Origin: Hyalangium minutum
GTDB lineage: Bacteria; Myxococcota; Myxococcia; Myxococcales; Myxococcaceae
Length of the DNA: 64,000 bases
Direction: 5' to 3'
NCBI RefSeq assembly: GCF_000737315.1
Contig: NZ_JMCB01000013.1
Location: 248,001 to 312,000 of the forward strand
Positions within the stretch are counted from its first letter, which is position 1; each line of letters starts with the position of its first letter. This document shows, piece after piece, positions 55,384 to 64,000 of this stretch. Below the pieces are notes generated by a model. The model had not been told where the DNA came from, made no database searches, and was given only the letters and a program-made list of their open reading frames with translations. Made by a program: the position numbers and the translations under genes.

Positions 55384-55485
55384 GTCCCTTCCTCCTCGGG
55401 GCACAGGGATGCTCGAGGCTCCCGTGGGTTTCGCTGCATGGAGATGAGAGCATCCCGTCCGGGCCCCGGTTATGGTGAAGGCCAC

Positions 55486-55896
55486 ATGGATGACAAGCTG
55501 AAGGAGCGCCTGAGCCATTTCGGTCAGGGTGGATATGACCGGTCGTTGACAGGGATGGAGCTGCTCGAGGTGAGCGGGGGCAAGGCCCGGGTGCGGCTGC
55601 CCGTGGGCGAGGCCGTGCAGAACGCCAACGGAATGTTGCACGGCGGCGCGGTGGCCACGCTGGTGGACGTGGTGGGCACGCTGGCCATCATGAGCGCGGA
55701 CCGCGACGGCCGGCCCGGCGTCTCCACGGATCTCAATGTGTCCTGGTTCTCTCCCGCGCCTGGCGACTCCACCGTGCTGGTGGAGGCCACCGTCCTCAAG
55801 TCCGGCCGCACCCTGGCCTTCGTCCAAGTGGACCTGCGCCGCGAGAACGATGGGGCGCTCGTGGCCCAGGGCCGGATGACCAAGTTCCTGGGCTGA
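55486..55896 (+). CDS. PaaI-family hotdog thioesterase
   Basis: QNANGMLHGGAVATLVD, STDLNVSW. Confidence 0.9.
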   Translation: MDDKLKERLSHFGQGGYDRSLTGMELLEVSGGKARVRLPVGEAVQNANGMLHGGAVATLVDVVGTLAIMSADRDGRPGVSTDLNVSWFSPAPGDSTVLVEATVLKSGRTLAFVQVDLRRENDGALVAQGRMTKFLG

Positions 55897-55908
55897 GCAG
55901 GAGGCGCC

Positions 55909-57111
55909 ATGTCGGTGATGATGATCAGCCGGCTCCTGATCCTCGCGCTGCTGAACCTGATCGGCTACGCCGTGGTGAAGCGGCTGTGGCCCGCCTTCTC
56001 CCGGGGCTGGCGTGCGTGGACCTATGCTGGCTTGGTGGCGCTGTCGTTCCTGGCCTGGGGGCTGCCCCTCGTGCTGGGGCTGGGGCTCCGGGGGCAGATC
56101 CCCGTCATTGGGGTGCCGCTCAAGCTCTTCTCCACGATGTGGATGGTCGCCGTCCTGATCGTCGTGCTGTTCGGCACGCCCTTCGTGCTGGTGCGGTGGT
56201 GGAAGCTGCGCCGCGCCACGGCCTCGGCGGCAGGCCCGGTGGCCGGAGGGGTGGACCTGGAGCGCCGCGGCGTGCTGATGAACATGGGGCGTGCCGTCCC
56301 CGTCGTCGCCGTGGGCACGAGCTCCGCAGGGGTGGTTCTGGGCAGCTCGGGCTTCGTTGTTCGCAAGCTGGAGGTGCGGCTCAAGGACTTACCCGACGCG
56401 CTCGATGGATTCCGGATTGGCCAGATCACCGACATTCACGTGGGGCCGTTCATCACCACGCAGGACCTCCGGGCCGCTGTGGAGGCGATGAACGCCGCGG
56501 AAGTCCACCTGCAGGTGATGACGGGCGATCTGATCGATGACGTCGAGCAGGTCGACGGCACGATGGAGGCGCTCGCGGCCTGCAAGGCTCCGCACGGGAT
56601 GCTGGCCATTCTCGGCAACCACGAATACTGGCGGGGCGTGGAGCCCATCCTGGAGGGGTACGAGTCCCTCGCGAAGCGTGCGCCGGTCCGCCTGCTGGTG
56701 GATGAGTCCCATGTCATCGAGCACGGCGGCGAACGCCTGCGTGTGGTGGGCGTGGACTACCCCATGGCCCGGCGCAACCCATTTCTCCGGGCGGAGCAGA
56801 TGCGCAGCTCGGCGGAAAAGGCGTTCGGGGGGACCTCTCCGGGGGAGGTGGTGCTGTGCCTGACCCACCATCCTTCGTTCTTCCCCTTGGCCGCCGAGCG
56901 CGGAGCCCACCTCACGCTCGCGGGCCACACGCACGGCGGCCAGGTCGCCTTCTTCGGCTTCCCGCTGTTCTGGTTCGTCTTCGACTACATGCTCGGCCGC
57001 TACAAGCTGAAGGACCGGCACCTCTATGTGTCGGGCGGCACGGGGCACTGGCTCCCGTTCCGGATCGGCATTCCTCCCGAGGTGTCGATCCTCACGCTCC
57101 GGAAGGCGTAG
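55909..57111 (+). CDS. Membrane-anchored metallophosphoesterase (YkuE/YaeI-like)
   Basis: DIHVG, GDLID, GNHEY, HHP, GHTHGGQ; three N-terminal TM helices. Confidence 0.92.
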   Translation: MSVMMISRLLILALLNLIGYAVVKRLWPAFSRGWRAWTYAGLVALSFLAWGLPLVLGLGLRGQIPVIGVPLKLFSTMWMVAVLIVVLFGTPFVLVRWWKLRRATASAAGPVAGGVDLERRGVLMNMGRAVPVVAVGTSSAGVVLGSSGFVVRKLEVRLKDLPDALDGFRIGQITDIHVGPFITTQDLRAAVEAMNAAEVHLQVMTGDLIDDVEQVDGTMEALAACKAPHGMLAILGNHEYWRGVEPILEGYESLAKRAPVRLLVDESHVIEHGGERLRVVGVDYPMARRNPFLRAEQMRSSAEKAFGGTSPGEVVLCLTHHPSFFPLAAERGAHLTLAGHTHGGQVAFFGFPLFWFVFDYMLGRYKLKDRHLYVSGGTGHWLPFRIGIPPEVSILTLRKA

Positions 57112-57129
57112 GGCGTTAGCTCAGGGGCC

Positions 57130-58617
57130 ATGCCAGAGTCCTGGTACGACGCGGTGGTGGTGGGCGCGGGCTTCGGAGGGCTGGCCACGGCACTCGAGCT
57201 GGCGCAGCGCGGCGCCCGGGTGGCGCTGTGCGAGGCCCTCAACTATCCCGGCGGTTGTGCCAGCACCTTCCGGCGGGATGGCTACGCCTTCGAGGCGGGC
57301 GCCACCCTGTGCTCCGGGCTCGCCGAGGAGCAGCTCTTCGGTCAGTGGGTGCGGAGGCACGGGCTGGACGTGACGGTGGACTGGATCGATCCGCTCGTGG
57401 AGCTGCGCACGCCTTCGCTGCGCCTGAGTGTCTACCGGGATCGCGAGCGCTTCCTGGAGCAGCTCTGCCGCCTGCCCGGTGCTCCGGTCCAAAGCGTGCG
57501 CCGCTTCTTCGCGCTCCAGCGCCAGGTCGCCGACGCGCTGTGGACGCTCTTCGATGATCCGGCGCTGTTGCCGCCGTTGGATGCGCGGGCCCTGCTGCGG
57601 CATGCCGCCCGCGTGCCTCGGTATGTGCCCTTGCTGCGCTGGGTGGGCCGCCCGCTGGGCGCCGTGCTGGAGCGCTTGGGGCTCCTGAACTTCACGCCCC
57701 TGCGGACGTACCTCGACGGGCTGTGCCAGATCACCATCCAGTGCAGCGCCGCCGAGGCCGAGACGCCCTTCGCCCTGGCCGCCATGGACTACTACTGGCG
57801 CGGGACGGGCCACGTGCGCGGAGGCATTGGCCGGCTGGCCGAGGCGCTCGTGCAGGCCATCACCCGCTGTGGCGGCGAGGTGCTTCTCGCCAACCGCGTG
57901 AAGGCCCTGGCGCCCGAGGCGGGAGGCTGGCGGGTCGAGACACGCCGGGGCGTGCTGCGCGCCCGCAGCGTGGCAGCCAATGTGCTGCCTCGGGGGATGC
58001 TGCGCCTGCTGGGCCAGGCGCCTGAGCAGCTCCCTCGGCTGGCGGAGCTGGCCGGGCGCGTGGAGGAGGGGTGGGGCGCGGCCATGCTGTACCGCGTGGC
58101 TCAAGCGCCTGAAGGTGTGCTCGCCAAGGCCTGCCACCTGGAGCTCGTCCAGGACGAGACCGCTCCGCTCGTGGAGGGCAACCACCTCTTCGTCTCTATC
58201 AGCGGTGAAGCGGACACGGGCCGCGCGCCCCCGAGCCAGCGCACGCTCACCATCTCCACCCATGTGCCCCTGCGCCGGCTGGCCTCACAGTCCAGCGAAG
58301 AGCAGGCCCTCTACGTCTCCCGCATCCAGGAGCGGATGCGCGAGGGCCTGGTGCGCCTCGCGCCCGAGTGGTCGCAGGACGTGCGGCACGAGCTGACGGC
58401 CTCGCCTCGCACCTTCGAGCGCTTCACCCGGCGCGAGGCGGGCGCTGTGGGCGGTGTGCCTCGCCGGGCCGGCTTCCACCATTACCGCGAGCTGGGCCCT
58501 CGGCCGGTGAGGCCGGGACTCTGGCTCGTGGGCGACTCTGTCTTCCCCGGGCAGAGCACCCTGGCCGCCGCGCTCGGGGGCGTCCGCTCCGCCGCGCAGA
58601 TCGCCGCCCGCCGCTGA
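57130..58617 (+). CDS. Phytoene desaturase/CrtD/CrtH-like FAD oxidoreductase
   Basis: VVGAGFGGL, GGCASTF.R.GY.FEAGAT, VGDSVFPGQS. Confidence 0.85.
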   Translation: MPESWYDAVVVGAGFGGLATALELAQRGARVALCEALNYPGGCASTFRRDGYAFEAGATLCSGLAEEQLFGQWVRRHGLDVTVDWIDPLVELRTPSLRLSVYRDRERFLEQLCRLPGAPVQSVRRFFALQRQVADALWTLFDDPALLPPLDARALLRHAARVPRYVPLLRWVGRPLGAVLERLGLLNFTPLRTYLDGLCQITIQCSAAEAETPFALAAMDYYWRGTGHVRGGIGRLAEALVQAITRCGGEVLLANRVKALAPEAGGWRVETRRGVLRARSVAANVLPRGMLRLLGQAPEQLPRLAELAGRVEEGWGAAMLYRVAQAPEGVLAKACHLELVQDETAPLVEGNHLFVSISGEADTGRAPPSQRTLTISTHVPLRRLASQSSEEQALYVSRIQERMREGLVRLAPEWSQDVRHELTASPRTFERFTRREAGAVGGVPRRAGFHHYRELGPRPVRPGLWLVGDSVFPGQSTLAAALGGVRSAAQIAARR

Positions 58618-58755
58618 CTACCGGCCGCCGTGGGAATAGCGAGCAAAGCGGGGAATTCTATCTGTCTGGGGTGTTTATTCGGGCGGTAAAAGACGCAGTG
58701 ACTCTGTTAGAAGGCCCTCTGGAAAAGAGGCGCTCCGTTGGGGGAGGAGACACGT

Positions 58756-59547
58756 ATGGCGAAGGCGAAGGGAACGGTCCTCGTCACCGGGGCCAATCGA
58801 GGCATCGGGTTCGAGGTCTGCCGACAGCTGGGTCGCGAGGGGGTGAGGGTGCTGTTGACGGCGAGGGACCCGGCCTCCGGTGAAGAGGCCACGGCCCGCC
58901 TGCGCGCCGAGGGGCTCGAGGTGCTCTTCGAGCGGCTCGATGTGGCCTCGCAGGAGAGCATCGACGCACTGGGCGCACGGCTCGCGGGCCGGGAGCAGCG
59001 GCTCGCGGCGCTGATCAACAACGCCGCCATCACCATGGATGGCTTCGACGAGAACGTGGCCGAGAAGACCACTGCGGTGAACTTCTTCGGGGCCTGGAAC
59101 GTGACGGACCGGCTGCTGCCGCTGCTCGAGGGGCACGGCCGGCTGGTGATGGTGTCGAGCAGCGTGGGCGAGCTGGGCACCCTGGCTCCGGAGATCCGCC
59201 GCCGGTTCGATCCACCGCCCTCCAAGGAGGCTCTGGCCTCGCTGGTGCGCGAGTTCATCGCGGACGTGCGGAGCGGGCACTACGCGCGCAAGGGCTGGCC
59301 GCGCTCGGCGTACCGGGTGTCCAAGGCCGCGCTCAACGCGCTGACACGGCGGCTGGCCTCGGAGCTGACGCCGCGGGGGTTGCTCGTGAATGCGGTGTGT
59401 CCCGGCTGGGTGCGCACGCGCATGGGCGGCTCCAGCGCTCCACGCAGCCTGGAGCAGGGCGCCGACACCATCGCCTGGGCTGCGATGCTGCCTCCAGACG
59501 GTCCCTCGGGCGGGTTCTTTCGGGACCGCAAGCCCATCGACTGGTAG
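58756..59547 (+). CDS. SDR oxidoreductase (carbonyl-reductase-like)
   Basis: TGANRGIG, INNAA, YRVSK, CPGWVRTRMGG. Confidence 0.93.
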   Translation: MAKAKGTVLVTGANRGIGFEVCRQLGREGVRVLLTARDPASGEEATARLRAEGLEVLFERLDVASQESIDALGARLAGREQRLAALINNAAITMDGFDENVAEKTTAVNFFGAWNVTDRLLPLLEGHGRLVMVSSSVGELGTLAPEIRRRFDPPPSKEALASLVREFIADVRSGHYARKGWPRSAYRVSKAALNALTRRLASELTPRGLLVNAVCPGWVRTRMGGSSAPRSLEQGADTIAWAAMLPPDGPSGGFFRDRKPIDW

Positions 59548-59564: not shown

Positions 59565-59975
59565 CTACAGCAGCGCCGAGGGCAGGCCGGCCTCGCGCTC
59601 GAGCAGCTCGGCGGCGCGCGAATCTCTCGGCACCCCGAAGCGCTGCCGGGAGCACATCAGCAACTGGCCCGAGTACACACAGTCGGCCAGCCCCGCCGCG
59701 CTCTGGCCGTGCAGCACGAGCAGGCTGGCCCGCTCGTCCACCAGCCGGGCGAGGATGCGCGCCTGCTCCGGCGAGGCGAAGAGGCTGACGACTGACTTCG
59801 CATCGAAGCGCGTCAGCGTGTCGAACTCCATGCCGAGCGTGGAGATGCAGGCCTCGCGGATGGACTGGAGGCCCGTCTCCAGCGAGGCGCTCTCCCGCGC
59901 CCGGGTGAAGGCCGAGGTGAAGCGGCCGAGCTCCCGGACGGCATACAGCGCAAAGGCATGGCGGAGGTGAGGCAT
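59565..59975 (-). CDS. Hypothetical helical protein
   Basis: Coding-like codon bias; follows the amidase gene on the same strand; start uncertain. Confidence 0.6.
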   Translation of the reverse strand: MPHLRHAFALYAVRELGRFTSAFTRARESASLETGLQSIREACISTLGMEFDTLTRFDAKSVVSLFASPEQARILARLVDERASLLVLHGQSAAGLADCVYSGQLLMCSRQRFGVPRDSRAAELLEREAGLPSALL

Positions 59976-60023
59976 GTGGAAATCAAACCTCCGCCGCGCC
60001 CCAAAATCATCCACCGCGAGCGA

Positions 60024-60857
60024 TCAGGAGATGCCCTTGCGCAGCCGCTCCCAGTCGAAGTTGGCGGACGGATCGCTCTTGCGGCCCTTGGGCACTGCCA
60101 CGTCCTTGTGGCCGACGATGTTGCCCATCGGCACGTTGTACTGCTGCTTCAGGTAGCCGGTGAGCTGGGTGAGCGACTTCATCTGTGCCTCGGTGTAGGG
60201 CGTCTTGCCGCCGCCGTCATTGACGATCTCGATGCCGATGGAGCGGCCGTTCACGTCAGTGGGCACGCCGTGCAGCTCGCCCTTGCCCGCGTGCCAGGCG
60301 CGCTTCTGGTCGTTCACCAACTGATAGATCTTGCCGTCGCGGTCCACCATGTAATGGGCGGAGACCTCGGCCTTGGGGTCGCGCATGTGGGCCAGGTCCG
60401 CCGCGCCGTTGTTGGAGGCGGTGTGGTGCAGGACGATCGTGTCGATGTCCGCGCCCTTGCGATCATCGAAGTTGGGTGACGGCGAGTTGACGACGGGGGG
60501 CTTCTGGAACACGCCCGGCTTTGTCTCGGGCTTGGTGGGAGCAGTCGGCCCGCTCAGCTTGGCCAGATCCTTCTTCAGTGCGGCCTGGGTCAGGTCCCCG
60601 TAGAAGCCGGTGGACGGCAGCTTGTGGTCCGCCTGGTACTTCTTGAGTGCTGCCTCCGTCTTGGGCCCGAAGGTGCCCGCGCCCGCGCCCACCTGCGCCG
60701 CCGTCATGTACTTCAGCGCCACCAGCGCGTCCTGAAGCTGCTTCACCTTGGGGCCCGTGTCTCCTTCCTTCAGGCCCGCAGGCGGAGCGGTGAGCGCGGT
60801 GCTGGCAGCGGCGGGAGCACGGGTGGCCGTGGCGGTGGTGCGGTTGATCGTCGTCAT
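60024..60857 (-). CDS. N-acetylmuramoyl-L-alanine amidase (AmpD/Amidase_2) with N-terminal peptidoglycan-binding domain
   Basis: VKQLQDAL...FGPKTEAALKKYQ; VLHHTA, SAHY, AWHAG, SIGIE, GHKDV...KSDP. Confidence 0.93.
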   Translation of the reverse strand: MTTINRTTATATRAPAAASTALTAPPAGLKEGDTGPKVKQLQDALVALKYMTAAQVGAGAGTFGPKTEAALKKYQADHKLPSTGFYGDLTQAALKKDLAKLSGPTAPTKPETKPGVFQKPPVVNSPSPNFDDRKGADIDTIVLHHTASNNGAADLAHMRDPKAEVSAHYMVDRDGKIYQLVNDQKRAWHAGKGELHGVPTDVNGRSIGIEIVNDGGGKTPYTEAQMKSLTQLTGYLKQQYNVPMGNIVGHKDVAVPKGRKSDPSANFDWERLRKGIS

Positions 60858-61009
60858 GGGAGCGTTTCCAGGCAGCGAGGTTGCCGGCTTCTATTCACGG
60901 CGGATTATTACAGGCGGACAGCTCCTGGTAAACAAGGAATCCAGAAGAGTCTTCCAGTATTCCCATTTTCGCCTAAATTGCGCGTCTCTCTTTTTCCGGA
61001 GGTCTCTGC

Positions 61010-61381
61010 ATGCGTCTGTTGGCTCTCGTGGGACTTGTGGGGCTGTTGAGCGGCTGTGGCGTGGGAGTGGAGGAGGAGGCCGCCGCGCCGGCTTCCGAGC
61101 GGACCGAGATGGGCCCGCCGGAGTCGTGGTGCCGCAGCTACACCTCGGCCCAGTACTGCCCGAAGTACATCTGTTACTGGACCGGCACCGCCTGCACGCT
61201 GCCTCCCGCGTCCGTGTCCGGGACTCCTGAGGAGACGACCCAGATGGGCCCGCCGGAGTCGTGGTGCCGCAGCTACACCACGCAGCGGTACTGCCCCTCC
61301 GTGTGCGCCTGGTACAGCTATCCCGCGCCCGGGTACTGCGGCCTGAAGGCCTCGTCGCTGACGGGCGAGCAGCAGCAGTAA
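61010..61381 (+). CDS. Small lipoprotein with two Cys-rich repeats
   Basis: Lipobox LLSGC; GGAGG RBS; two MGPPESWCRSYT-x4-CP-x2/3-C-x-W...C modules. Confidence 0.8.
   Translation: MRLLALVGLVGLLSGCGVGVEEEAAAPASERTEMGPPESWCRSYTSAQYCPKYICYWTGTACTLPPASVSGTPEETTQMGPPESWCRSYTTQRYCPSVCAWYSYPAPGYCGLKASSLTGEQQQ
61107..61279. repeat. 38-bp perfect direct repeat, 135 bp apart (coding duplication)
   Basis: agatgggcccgccggagtcgtggtgccgcagctacacc at 61107-61144 and 61242-61279. Confidence 0.95.
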
Positions 61382-61457
61382 GTCCTCGGGTTCACCGCGC
61401 AGTGAGCACCGCGTCCGCTCCGGCTTGGCTGGAGCGGACGTTTGCTTTTGGGGGCTC

Positions 61458-61486
61458 TTGCCAGCGCGACTCGGCGCGGTTAACCA
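61458..61486 (+). promoter_or_regulatory. Candidate sigma70-type promoter
   Basis: TTGCCA-17 bp-TAACCA; predicted +1 falls on the A of ATG at 61493. The -10 match is imperfect. Confidence 0.5.
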
Positions 61487-61492
61487 TGAGGC

Positions 61493-61570
61493 ATGCGTCT
61501 CGTGGTGTGTGCTCGTCGATTTAGCCGCCCCCCGGCCCCGTTTGGGCGTCGGGAGGCCGTGCTGCCGTAG
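61493..61570 (+). CDS. Putative leaderless leader peptide MRLVVCARRFSRPPAPFGRREAVLP
   Basis: ATG at 61493, TAG at 61568-61570; its last codons overlap one arm of the leader switch helix. Confidence 0.55.
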   Translation: MRLVVCARRFSRPPAPFGRREAVLP

Positions 61571-61678
61571 CGCGCACTCCTCTCGGTAGCGGATCGCCTC
61601 GCTGGCGTGATGCTCGCCCGGACTCGCTGGGGGGGCATTCGAGCTCTTGTCCGTTCCGCTCCCATTCCTGCCGAGAGG
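61524..61678 (+). promoter_or_regulatory. Structured 5' leader with alternative anti-SD/SD pairing (translational attenuator candidate)
   Basis: GCTGCCG(61561-67):CGGTAGC(61584-90) competes with CCTCTCGGTAG(61579-89):CTGCCGAGAGG(61668-78), which covers the RBS; additional hairpins present. Confidence 0.65.
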
Positions 61679-61684
61679 TTTCCC

Positions 61685-62833
61685 ATGTCCGTTGCCATTC
61701 TGAGCGCCGAGGAAGTCCGGCGCGCGCTGTCCGTCCGCGATCTCACCAACCCTGCTGCTGGCCCCCACGCGATGCAGCGCCTCATCGAGGGCGCGCTCGA
61801 GGCCCTGCGCCTCGCCTGGGGCTGCGAAGTTCGTGTCCACCGCCAGAGCCCCATCGTCTCCATCGTCAGCAACTACGATCACCTGCACTACCCACCCGAT
61901 GGCGCCGCGCGGGATGCCCGCTACACGCGCTACGTCTGCGACACCGCGCTGCTGCGCACACAGACCTCGGCGATGATTCCTGGGCTGCTGCGGCGGCTGG
62001 CCGAGGCTCCTCCCGAGGACGTGCTGCTGGCCTGTCCCGGGCTCGTGTACCGGCGTGACTGCATCGACCGGCTCCACACCGGCGAGCCGCACCAGATGGA
62101 TCTGTGGCGCGTCCGCCGAGGCGCCACACTGGGAACTGCGGAGCTTCGCGAGATGATCGAGATCGTGGTCCGCGCCTTGTTGCCGGGACGGGAGCTGCGC
62201 GTAGCGCCAGCGCGGCACCCGTACACGACCGATGGCCTGCAGATCGATGTCCGCGACGGCGCGCAGTGGGTGGAGATCGGCGAGTGCGGTCTGGCACTGC
62301 CCGCGCTGCTGGAGGAGAGCGGACTGGAGCCTGGGCGCACCACGGGCCTCGCGATGGGGATCGGGCTCGATCGCATCCTGATGCTGCGAAAGGGGCTGGA
62401 TGACATCCGCCTGTTGCGCTCGGCGGATCCGCGGATCGCGTCGCAGTTACTCGATCTGGAGCCATACGTCCCCGTGTCCTCGATGCCCGCGGTGCGGCGT
62501 GACTTGTCGCTGGCGCTCGCCGAGGAGGACACGCCCGAGGAACTGGGCGACGCGGTCCGGGCGGCGCTCGGAGACAGGGCGGAGTTGGTGGAGAGCGTGG
62601 AGGTGCTCTCGGAGACGCCGTACCGGGCGCTGCCTCCGGCGGCGGTGGCGCGGATGGGCATCGCGCCTGGACAGAAGAACGTGCTGCTCCGCGTGGTGCT
62701 GCGCGCGTTGGATCGCACGTTGACCCACGAGGAATGCAACGCACTGCGGGATGCCATCTACGCGGCGCTGCATCGGGGCTCCGCGTGGGAGTGGGCGGCG
62801 CGGCCTGTTGAGCGCCCCATACGCTCGCCCTGA
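61685..62833 (+). CDS. PheS-related class II ligase with C-terminal FDX-ACB domain (recalled as the 'SrmL mystery ligase' family)
   Basis: LLRTQTSA, motif 2 PGLVYRRDCIDRLH..PHQMD, motif 3 AMGIGLDRILM...DDIRLL; FDX-ACB RRDLSL...DRTLTHEE; ATG at 61685 after GAGAGG. Confidence 0.85.
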   Translation: MSVAILSAEEVRRALSVRDLTNPAAGPHAMQRLIEGALEALRLAWGCEVRVHRQSPIVSIVSNYDHLHYPPDGAARDARYTRYVCDTALLRTQTSAMIPGLLRRLAEAPPEDVLLACPGLVYRRDCIDRLHTGEPHQMDLWRVRRGATLGTAELREMIEIVVRALLPGRELRVAPARHPYTTDGLQIDVRDGAQWVEIGECGLALPALLEESGLEPGRTTGLAMGIGLDRILMLRKGLDDIRLLRSADPRIASQLLDLEPYVPVSSMPAVRRDLSLALAEEDTPEELGDAVRAALGDRAELVESVEVLSETPYRALPPAAVARMGIAPGQKNVLLRVVLRALDRTLTHEECNALRDAIYAALHRGSAWEWAARPVERPIRSP

Positions 62834-62905
62834 GCAAGGCTGGAAAATAACGTCCCTGTGGCAAGTCGTACCCCGTCGCTGCGGGCGGGGTACGATGGGA
62901 ACGCC

Positions 62906-63559
62906 ATGCTCTTCCGAGACAAAACGCCCCCATCGCGTTCGGAGATCATCGCCGAGGCGGATCGCGCGCGCTCCAAAGGCCGGCTGAAGAAGGCCATCAC
63001 CGGGTACCGCAAGGCGCTGGAGCTGGAGCCCAAGGATCCGGTGGTGCTCGGGAAGCTGGCGCCGTTGCTGGCGAGGACGAAGGAGCATGAGGCCTCGCTG
63101 CAGAGCTTCCGGGCAGCGGCGCAGGGGCATTTGGATAAGGGCTTCGCGGACAAGGCGCTGGCCGTCTACGCGCAGGCCGCGGAGGAGTTCCCGCACCAGT
63201 TGAACCTCTGGCAGCAGATGGCGCAGTTGAACATGTCGAAGGGACACCGGGCCGAGGCGGTGAAGACGCTGCTGCGGGGCCGGCTCCACTTCCGCCGCAA
63301 GACCGAGCGCCGGGGCGCCATCACCCTGCTGCAGGAGGTGCTGGCGCTCGAGCCGACGCTGTTCGAGGTGAAGCTGGATCTGGGGCTGCAGCTCGCCCGC
63401 GAGAAGCACGTGGCCGAGGCGATGACCTTGCTCAACCCGATGGTGCTGGACGCCAAGACGCGCCCTCAGTTGCGCCGGCTGCGGTGGACGCTGGCACTTG
63501 CGTCTCCGAGCGTCGCGGCGTGGGGTCGCTGGGTGCGCGCCGTGGTGCTGGGCCGCTGA
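62906..63559 (+). CDS. Tetratricopeptide repeat protein
   Basis: KAITGYRKALELEPKD and further TPR-like helix pairs; ATG at 62906. Confidence 0.82.
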   Translation: MLFRDKTPPSRSEIIAEADRARSKGRLKKAITGYRKALELEPKDPVVLGKLAPLLARTKEHEASLQSFRAAAQGHLDKGFADKALAVYAQAAEEFPHQLNLWQQMAQLNMSKGHRAEAVKTLLRGRLHFRRKTERRGAITLLQEVLALEPTLFEVKLDLGLQLAREKHVAEAMTLLNPMVLDAKTRPQLRRLRWTLALASPSVAAWGRWVRAVVLGR

Positions 63560-63589
63560 GGGCGTCAGGACTTCACGGCGGAGGCTGCG

Positions 63590-64000
63590 TTACTTCGCGG
63601 GGGTGGGCAGGCCCAGCACGTACGTCACGGCGGGCTTGCCCGGCTTCTGTGCCTGGCCCACCTCCCAGGTGTAGCTCTCGCGCGGGAGGCTGTCCGTCAG
63701 CTTCCGCAGCTCGTCGGGGCTGTGCGCCCGCAGCGCCGACACGAGTCCGTCCCAGAAGATGACCAGGGGGAACAGCGGCACCCCGTACGTGAGCAGCAGC
63801 CGGGGCAGGGTGAGCGGCCGGATCGTCGGCGTGAAGAGCAGCACGAGCAGCGGGATGAAGAGGGCCGCGATCACCCCCTTCGGAGAGCGCTCGACGACCT
63901 CGAATGCTCCAATCGGGACACCCCTCGCTTGGGCATCCGCCAGCACCGCGCGCGCCGCCTCGGGCTTGAAGTGGTGCAGGGCGTTGAACAGGGTTCGCAT
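63590..64000 (-). CDS. C-terminal part of a probable class I SAM-dependent methyltransferase-like protein (runs off the window)
   Basis: RTLFNALHHF.PE.A..VL.DA...IGAFE, WDGLVSALRAH; 5' end lies outside the window. Confidence 0.7.
   Translation of the reverse strand: MRTLFNALHHFKPEAARAVLADAQARGVPIGAFEVVERSPKGVIAALFIPLLVLLFTPTIRPLTLPRLLLTYGVPLFPLVIFWDGLVSALRAHSPDELRKLTDSLPRESYTWEVGQAQKPGKPAVTYVLGLPTPAK

Follow-up and report, generated by a model that had tools for sequence, protein, structure and literature searches.

SrmL, probably a stand-alone monomeric relative of phenylalanyl-tRNA synthetase in bacteria, and the conserved single-phenylalanine-codon leader upstream of its gene

What does a single-chain relative of phenylalanyl-tRNA synthetase (PheRS) do in a bacterium, when bacterial PheRS is considered an obligate (alpha-beta)2 enzyme and the monomer a mitochondrial speciality? 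The question is raised by the gene srmL in a stretch of 64,000 nucleotides of Hyalangium minutum (contig NZ_JMCB01000013.1, positions 248,001 to 312,000), which is referred to here as the window and has a GC content of about 68%. An earlier note, made from the letters of this DNA, had singled out the gene as a monomeric PheS-like ligase with a rebuilt amino acid pocket. We find that SrmL is a member of a catalogued, uncharacterized family and probably a stand-alone monomeric PheRS-type class II ligase, and that the gene is preceded in all phyla sampled by a short leader open reading frame (ORF) with one invariant Phe codon, followed by RNA strands with alternative partners. This leader is the first contextual clue for the family and links the gene to Phe-tRNAPhe homeostasis. 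Our tentative reading, which could well prove wrong, is that SrmL is an auxiliary, editing-free PheRS-type enzyme gated by the decoding of that one codon.

The identity of the gene product is clear. The 382-residue protein matches the profile hidden Markov model NF051887 ("PheS-related mystery ligase SrmL") with 520.7 bits against a cutoff of 300, residues 17 to 365 covering positions 1 to 349 of the 349 in the profile, which verifies the family name that the earlier note had put forward. It also carries the signature of the family, a PheS-type core joined to an FDX-ACB domain together with D19-L20, W141, H178, Y180, and E200, which are near-invariant or invariant in 34 to 50 diverse members. 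Homologues named SrmL under the same model are found in Hyalangium, Archangium, Pyxidicoccus, Corallococcus, and Myxococcus, the nearest being those of Hyalangium with 90 to 95% identity. The bacterial PheS model TIGR00468 gives 114.1 bits against an equivalog cutoff of 237.45, and the mitochondrial PheRS (PheRS-M) model TIGR00469 gives 114.8 bits against 258.35, so that the protein falls well short of both. Pfam finds tRNA-synt_2d (2.9e-34) and FDX-ACB (1.5e-08) within the boundaries given in Table 1, and all of the motifs quoted in the earlier note are present, namely, motif 2 (VYRRDCIDRLHTGEPHQMD, residues 121 to 139), motif 3 (GIGLDR, residues 225 to 230), HPY (residues 178 to 180), GECG (residues 199 to 202), and AMG (residues 223 to 225). 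The ATG at 61685, with the stop codon at 62831 to 62833, is backed by a conserved Shine-Dalgarno (SD) sequence, CCGAGAGG, 7 to 14 nucleotides (nt) upstream and by N-terminal agreement over 79 loci; both favor it over a longer GTG start of the same ORF at 61607, which is unsupported. No paper mentioning either SrmL or a monomeric PheRS paralogue from bacteria turned up in our literature search.

The AlphaFold2 model, built on a 50-sequence alignment (pLDDT, 90.5; pTM, 0.85), has the closed form of human mitochondrial PheRS (3cmq) as its best full-length structural match in Foldseek (TM, 0.76/0.72), while bacterial PheS chains superpose on the core alone. Together with the Pfam domains, this bears out the proposal that SrmL is laid out like mitochondrial PheRS, with the core and the FDX-ACB domain in a single chain. 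The comparison with PheS and mitochondrial PheRS suggested in the earlier note therefore places the protein in the SrmL family, below both PheRS equivalog cutoffs, and with a 3cmq-like fold. There is no beta subunit and no editing domain, the residues for ATP, the alpha-amino group, and the carboxylate are intact, and the pocket is lined by His178 and Tyr180.

The pocket was surveyed in 42 diverse full-length members of the family, the most distant at 31% identity, aligned with Escherichia coli PheS, and the residues were mapped by alignment onto the PheRS of Mycobacterium tuberculosis and Thermus thermophilus (PMC12447630, PMC3275996). Arg is kept in motif 2 (R123) and in motif 3 (R230), as is E197; kept too are the binders of the alpha-amino group and carboxylate (S95, Q137, and D139, the last of which is Glu in PheRS) and, at the back of the Phe pocket, the wall formed by T181 and A223. 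The replacements are H178 for M. tuberculosis F255, Y180 for F257, E200 for G282, and W141 for E. coli L212, and the FPF loop that stacks on the Phe ring in PheRS is thus absent, its place being taken by HPY. The substitutions that the earlier note saw at the FPF, LGCG, and AFG positions are in this way confirmed as family-wide and conserved, with H178 in 36, Y180 in 41, and E200 in 38 of the 42 members; such near-invariance, shared by W141, indicates that the replacements were selected and are not the result of decay. The note's next step, that the substrate is probably not Phe, does not follow, since eukaryotic cytosolic PheRS has Asn410 and Tyr412 at both Phe positions and still recognizes Phe via an aromatic triad (PMC3275996, PMC12447630). 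That step is left unsupported also by the kept back wall, by the retained S95, Q137, D139, R123, and R230, and by the leader described below, in which Phe is the sole invariant residue. E200 takes the place of M. tuberculosis alpha-Gly282, which is close to the alpha-amino binders and contacts ligands beside Gln215 (PMC12447630). It may make up for the shortening of Glu to Asp at position 139, the two changes together shifting the carboxylate for the alpha-ammonium group, and need not read a side chain. A divergent subclade (P0213, P0214, and P0267; 32 to 38% identity) has (L/C)YYI in place of HPYT and GGG or SGG in place of ECG, and its specificity may differ from that of the main family.

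The earlier description of the anticodon-binding domain as intact holds for the fold of the FDX-ACB domain, in which the structural RD(L/I)S motif is kept, but not for the residues that read G34. These readers are D364/F366 in the human mitochondrial enzyme, D729/Y731 in T. thermophilus, and F780 in M. tuberculosis (PMC7540514, PMC12447630). In the sequence alignment, the corresponding columns fall on E306 and L308 of SrmL, and the family holds E, K, Q, or S at the one and L, I, V, or K at the other, never an aromatic residue. As far as this alignment can tell, the mitochondrial readout set of Asp364, Phe366, Ser375, and Arg414 (PMC7540514) is therefore not retained, the Asp and the Phe being E306 and L308, respectively. 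A conserved insertion of about 13 residues, a short helix in the model, adjoins the site, with R323-L-G325 inside it and Q330-K-N332 right after it, and the sheet bears several conserved Arg residues. The domain probably still binds nucleic acid, but not through the canonical G34 contacts.

A scan of 185,579 species-representative genomes with SrmL-specific peptide patterns found the family in at least 576 of them (about 0.3%), in six or more phyla and many soil and sediment taxa. Most of these genomes are from Myxococcota, and the others are from Gemmatimonadota, Actinomycetota (including Streptomyces and Planobispora), Planctomycetota, Steroidobacter-type Gammaproteobacteria, and Obscuribacteraceae; a Micavibrio member was found in a separate protein search. 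Identity across phyla is 55 to 69%. The gene neighborhood was compared in 81 loci, with ORFs called with our own GC3 filter and clustered by BLAST. In these loci, srmL usually stands alone behind a gap of 200 to 1,000 nt, and across the six or more phyla represented no neighboring gene family is conserved between clades, the largest non-SrmL cluster comprising 15 loci and not being adjacent. Neither pheT nor a canonical pheS was found in the window or in the 80 related loci (flanks of up to 10 kb), in agreement with the earlier statement that no pheT is adjacent, and the adjacent pheT that would mark an (alpha-beta)2 enzyme with an editing domain is thus lacking throughout this set. There are no tRNA genes in the window and none adjacent to srmL in 44 loci, and longer family members had no informative extra domain.

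What is conserved next to srmL is an element on its 5' side, seen in all phyla sampled in an alignment of upstream regions. A sequence-only model of the first 60 nt of the element found it upstream of srmL and on the correct strand in 73 of 81 sources, with one match per locus save for one; other matches in 1.39 Mb (both strands) appeared only at E values above 0.1, and a regular-expression check agreed. The exception is an Anaeromyxobacter locus (L059, Anaeromyxobacter sp. PSR-1, positions 1110 to 1220) with two adjacent matches 5' of srmL, where the hairpin region of the leader may have been duplicated in tandem.

Several properties of the element point to a short translated ORF 5' of the regulated gene. 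An in-frame ATG or GTG stands 5 to 13 codons before the Phe codon, without an intervening stop, in 74 of 76 loci, compared with 4 and 17 of 76 in the other two frames, and the first in-frame stop follows 16 to 18 codons after Phe (interquartile range; 10 to 38 codons overall). The predicted peptides have 24 to 33 residues and follow the consensus M-x(6-10)-R-R-F-x-x-P, in which no residue but Phe is invariant. Phe is encoded by UUU in 73 and by UUC in 3 of the 76 loci. The residue before it is mostly Arg, as CGA in 63 loci and otherwise as CGC or CGG, the Arg before that is CGU (40/76), CGC, or AGA, and Pro (CCC) stands at position +3 in 73 of 76. The synonymous Arg codons argue for selection at the amino acid level. 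In neighboring genes, UUU accounts for 3.8 to 6.7% of the codons for Phe and CGA for about 7% of those for Arg, and the preference for both in the leader despite this rarity argues for selection at the codon or nucleotide level as well. For the amino acid that would be sensed, the leader has a single codon, which is invariant and is the rare synonym. Since its start and stop codons are specific to one frame and its Arg codons vary synonymously, we rejected a riboswitch or small-RNA reading of the element. Rfam gave no relevant match at E values of 1 or below, including T-boxes and riboswitches, in positions 60800 to 63700. Sensing of elongation factor P (EF-P) or polyproline by the leader was also rejected, as Pro-Pro is missing from many leaders. 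The stretch GUCGAUUUA (61514 to 61524) shows more conservation at the nucleotide level than the peptide needs, in genomes of about 70% GC. RNase E-type enzymes prefer to cleave at RN↓WUU, and this stretch, which fits that preference, may double as a site of cleavage or protein binding.

The upstream gene is ended by a terminator-like hairpin, which implies that the srmL leader starts its own transcript. A putative promoter was read from the sequence and from cross-locus conservation (Table 1), while a consensus sigma-70 scan of the window did not report it. Other loci have a TAnnnT box 6 to 8 nt before the leader ATG or GTG. This spacing would put the transcription start on the A of the leader ATG or right beside it, so that the mRNA would be leaderless.

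The leader contains strands that can pair in alternative ways. A C-rich strand (seg1) follows the Phe codon and can pair either locally with a G-rich strand (seg2) that is still within the leader ORF or with a distal G-run (seg4), and an anti-SD sequence, a median of 13 nt after the leader stop across loci, is complementary to the SD sequence of srmL. Duplex energies in fixed windows were compared with those of 20,000 partner permutations over 60 non-redundant loci. Own-partner duplexes were more stable than swapped ones for seg1:seg2 (z = -9.1), seg1:seg4 (z = -11.2), and anti-SD:SD (z = -10.3), and none of the 20,000 permutations reached values as low. No excess stability was found in this test when seg2 was paired with the anti-SD or with the middle region, nor in the controls, and a decoy pairing between seg2 and the anti-SD is thus unsupported (z = -1.8). 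Lineage-specific compensating changes are seen for seg1/seg4 in CCCCUUGA/UCAAGGGG (L035), CCCCGUGCCC/GGGCACGGGG (L029), and CCCCCUGCUCG/CGAGCAGGGGG (L073) and for anti-SD/SD in UCCUCUCGG/CCGAGAGG (the window), ACGUUCUCUCUG/CUGGAGAGAACG (L036), and UUUCCUCCGG/CCGGAGGAA (L033). In Gemmatimonadota and in loci L071, L074, and L080, seg4 is the 3' arm of a terminator-like hairpin followed by a U-tract, and such U-tract terminators occur in about 10 loci. As in attenuators, pairings that exclude one another and act on a terminator or on the SD sequence are therefore predicted in silico. RNAalifold on a MAFFT alignment of the 5' hairpin found no structure, as bulges shift the register of the 3' arm. 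Neither an Rfam match nor a paper was found for the leader ORF and its RNA switch, which appear not to have been described before.

As to the polarity of the switch, we lean only slightly to the classical one, in which a stalled ribosome turns srmL on, over the opposite one, in which read-through does. Stalling as the ON state has precedents in trpRS1 of Streptomyces coelicolor and in leaderless Cys attenuators, the spacing between UUU and seg1 is fixed, and in terminator-type leaders seg4 abuts the U-tract, so that only a freed seg2 that sequesters seg3 could prevent termination; the 2:3 complementarity has a z of -4.6 with narrow windows. Read-through as the ON state is favored by the seg1:seg4 pairing, which gives the strongest signal and needs seg1 free of the ribosome, by the position of the anti-SD next to the terminating ribosome, and by the local partner that seg4 has downstream in most leaders. 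The last point (39 versus 9) comes, like the 2:3 value, from a test with narrow windows, in which segments were picked on their own partners, so that only its 2:3, 2:5, and control rows are unbiased. Constrained minimum free energy (MFE) folding also speaks for read-through, as a ribosome placed at UUU keeps the terminator in eight of eight terminator-type leaders and one at the leader stop gives seg1:seg4 in five of eight. MFE folding ignores kinetics, however, and it mispredicts the E. coli trp attenuator too, in which the terminator exceeds the antiterminator in stability.

How could the enzyme and its leader fit together? SrmL would form the adenylate of an aromatic amino acid about as large as Phe, in the likeliest case Phe, and pass the aminoacyl group on to tRNAPhe, as an auxiliary to the housekeeping PheRS in the small minority of bacteria that carry it. 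The auxiliary status would follow from the patchy distribution of srmL and from the universality of pheST in bacteria, to which we know of no exception. Synthesis would be gated by the leaderless leader ORF, where CGA-UUU stands directly 5' of seg1, seg1 pairs with seg2 or seg4, the anti-SD after the leader stop pairs with the SD of srmL, and seg4 is in some phyla part of an intrinsic terminator. The progress of the ribosome through the single Phe codon would pick the fold, so that expression would track the availability of Phe-tRNAPhe. A ribosome that awaits Phe-tRNAPhe at UUU would cover the C-run of seg1, a hallmark of classical attenuators, which would tie srmL to the supply of this tRNA. 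With the classical polarity, a ribosome stalled at UUU would mask seg1 and srmL would be on during Phe-tRNAPhe shortage, as in Phe starvation or PheRS inhibition. Several observations weigh against this account. The near-invariant H178, Y180, and E200 could mean a new specificity; the G34 readers are lost across the family, and human mitochondrial PheRS becomes inactive when one of them is changed by D364G (PMC7540514); the leader offers only one Phe codon, where classical attenuators have several; and the constrained MFE folds favor the opposite polarity. In addition, NF051887 carries no assigned function, the NCBI curators having left it open.

Much of the same evidence bears on the main rival, a refinement of the view in the earlier note, namely, a ligase of new specificity, which would activate another amino acid (a hydroxylated or heteroaromatic Phe analogue, or His) or use an acceptor besides tRNAPhe, such as another RNA, a protein, or a small molecule, recognized via the remodeled FDX-ACB domain and its insertion. 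The family has H, Y, and E where PheRS has F, F, and G, the conserved R323-L-G...Q330-K-N332 segment lies beside a site that has lost its canonical readers, the scores are far under both PheS equivalog cutoffs, and if srmL is switched on upon read-through of the Phe codon, a non-essential, Phe-consuming activity would fit. Set against this are a back wall and alpha-amino and ATP contacts of the PheRS type, the Phe specificity that eukaryotic enzymes keep with Asn and Tyr at the same positions (PMC3275996), the lack of a partner gene, tRNA gene, or domain fusion that would suggest another acceptor, and a leader whose only invariant residue is Phe, and we regard a changed specificity as possible but doubtful. 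A form of this idea that takes in the leader is, in our view, rather unlikely as well: SrmL would be a new, editing-free activity like that of an aminoacyl-tRNA synthetase (aaRS), acting on an aromatic amino acid with an acceptor other than tRNAPhe that is chosen by the remodeled domain, and it would be licensed by a cross-phylum leaderless leader that reads Phe-tRNAPhe at one CGA-UUU pair.

The leader could instead act as a peptide, R-R-F-x-x-P working in the exit tunnel as a ligand-sensing or intrinsic arrest sequence of the TnaC or SpeFL type, in which case the signal could be any metabolite and would say little on the substrate. This would suit the single Phe codon, the conservation at the peptide level (Arg before Phe by CGU, CGC, CGG, or AGA, Phe by either codon, and the Pro at +3), and the fairly fixed distance to the stop in most leaders. 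We consider it improbable, as that distance has a wide overall range, the C-terminal half of the peptide is unconserved, the Pro codons overlap the C-run needed for RNA pairing, and the bias to the rare CGA and UUU is in keeping with a pressure on decoding speed or on the nucleotides rather than on the peptide. Least probable is a non-catalytic paralogue, a regulator or sensor that binds Phe, ATP, or RNA without turnover, in a role like that of HisZ toward HisG. Loss of aminoacylation is known from several aaRS paralogues, and the contacts in the anticodon domain are altered here; yet the motif 2 and motif 3 Arg residues, E197, and the alpha-amino binders show little or no variation in the family, which would be unexpected after a loss of catalysis, and no gene for a partner enzyme is linked to srmL.

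The features of the locus are collected in Table 1. Of the genes around it, a tetratricopeptide repeat (TPR) protein gene (62858 to 63559, plus strand) begins 24 nt after the srmL stop and may be cotranscribed with it; this adjacency is seen only in the window and in its two nearest relatives, loci L002 and L004, and is not a feature of the family. Upstream, positions 61010 to 61381 (plus strand) encode a predicted lipoprotein of 123 residues with the signal LLSGCG and two Cys-rich repeats (MGPPESWCRSYT..YCP), which has no Pfam or NCBIfam match and is, among the fetched loci, common only to the nearest Hyalangium locus, L002. Farther upstream, on the minus strand, are an AmpD-like N-acetylmuramoyl-L-alanine amidase with an N-terminal peptidoglycan-binding domain (60024 to 60857) and, after the amidase gene, a 149-residue ORF with no family match (59565 to 60014). 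A run of four same-strand genes (55438 to 59547, plus strand) for a hotdog thioesterase, a membrane metallophosphoesterase (LpxG/YaeI-like), a CrtD-like FAD desaturase, and a short-chain dehydrogenase/reductase may be a small lipid- or carotenoid-modifying cluster.

Table 1. Features in and around srmL, with positions in the window (seg, segment)
Feature	Position	Strand	Basis or remark
Terminator-like hairpin and T-tract ending the upstream gene (61010-61381)	61411-61441	+	Sequence scan
Putative promoter: -35 TTGCCA (61458-61463), 16-nt spacer, -10 TTAACC (61480-61485)	61458-61485	+	Read from sequence, cross-locus conservation
Predicted leader ORF, 25 codons and UAG, MRLVVCARRFSRPPAPFGRREAVLP	61493-61570	+	Frame test, leader peptide list
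Rare-codon run CGU-CGA-UUU (Arg-Arg-Phe)	61514-61522	+	Phe codon 61520-61522 invariant
seg1, C-rich strand GCCGCCCCCCGGCCCC, inside leader ORF, starts 2 nt after UUU	61524-61539	+	Pairs with seg2 or seg4
seg2, G-rich strand GGGCGUCGGGAGGCC, local hairpin with seg1	61544-61558	+	Folding, permutation test
Anti-SD UCCUCUCGG, starts 10 nt after leader stop	61578-61586	+	Pairs with srmL SD
seg3/seg4, CCCGG..CUGGGGGGGC; seg4 G-run (61627-61636) complementary to seg1	61617-61636	+	Pairing tests
SD sequence CCGAGAGG of srmL	61671-61678	+	Cross-locus conservation, anti-SD pairing
srmL coding sequence, 382 residues, NF051887	61685-62833	+	ORF, HMM (hidden Markov model), Pfam, homologues
Class II PheS-type catalytic core, residues 53-254	61841-62446	+	Pfam and family alignment
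Within core: motif 2, residues 119-141; motif 3, residues 221-230		+	Alignment
Within core: H178-P-Y180-T181; E200-C-G202	62216-62227; 62282-62290	+	Alignment
FDX-ACB (B8-like) domain, residues 265-363	62477-62773	+	Pfam, model
Family-specific insertion in FDX-ACB, residues 313-329	62621-62671	+	Alignment, model

Our results extend a monomer type known as mitochondrial to a relative in at least 576 bacterial species. They suggest several hypotheses, a backup PheRS for Phe starvation, an inhibitor-resistant PheRS, or a Phe-dependent side reaction. If SrmL is an inhibitor-insensitive PheRS, this matters for antibacterials that target PheRS, and if its charging has another target, it represents a new activity derived from the aaRS. 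The leader is the most direct experimental entry to the family, as its start codon, the UUU codon, and seg1 are simple genetic handles.

Among known systems, EpmA (PoxA), the LysRS paralogue that modifies EF-P, resembles SrmL in being a class II aaRS paralogue with a non-housekeeping role. EpmA has no anticodon-binding domain and is linked to efp and epmB, whereas SrmL keeps a domain of the RNA-binding type and has no conserved neighbor. The EpmA-like role considered in the earlier note thus finds no support, as no conserved partner gene was found in the 81 loci. With bacterial PheS (TIGR00468), SrmL has in common motifs 2 and 3, S95, Q137, R123, R230, T181, and A223, at about 30% identity in the core, but it is without the N-terminal coiled-coil arm, a nearby pheT, and the FPF loop and has a fused B8-like domain instead. 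Mitochondrial PheRS-M (FARS2, 3CMQ) shares with it the single chain of a PheS-type module and a B8/FDX-ACB domain and the lack of an editing domain. The two are 22 to 24% identical, and SrmL differs in having HPY for FPF and Glu200 for Gly, in not conserving the G34 readers D364 and F366, and in its extra 13-residue insertion. By sequence, its core is closer to bacterial PheS-alpha, and its C-terminal domain closer to the B8 domain of bacterial PheT, than to PheRS-M.

For the leader, the nearest parallels are attenuators. The auxiliary trpRS1 of S. coelicolor is under attenuation control, according to PMC4787780, which cites Vecchione and Sello 2010 as its reference 57, and mycobacteria have attenuators with leaderless poly-Cys short ORFs (bioRxiv 10.1101/834739). 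Like these and the trp and phe leaders, the srmL leader is predicted to consist of a short ORF in which the codon of one amino acid precedes a strand with alternative partners, with control over a terminator, the SD sequence, or both, and it would be leaderless as in the mycobacterial Cys ORFs. It differs from classical attenuators in presenting its single Phe codon in CGU-CGA-UUU rather than in a run of cognate codons and from the textbook 2:3 arrangement in that its best-supported alternative pairing is that of seg1 with the distal G-run.

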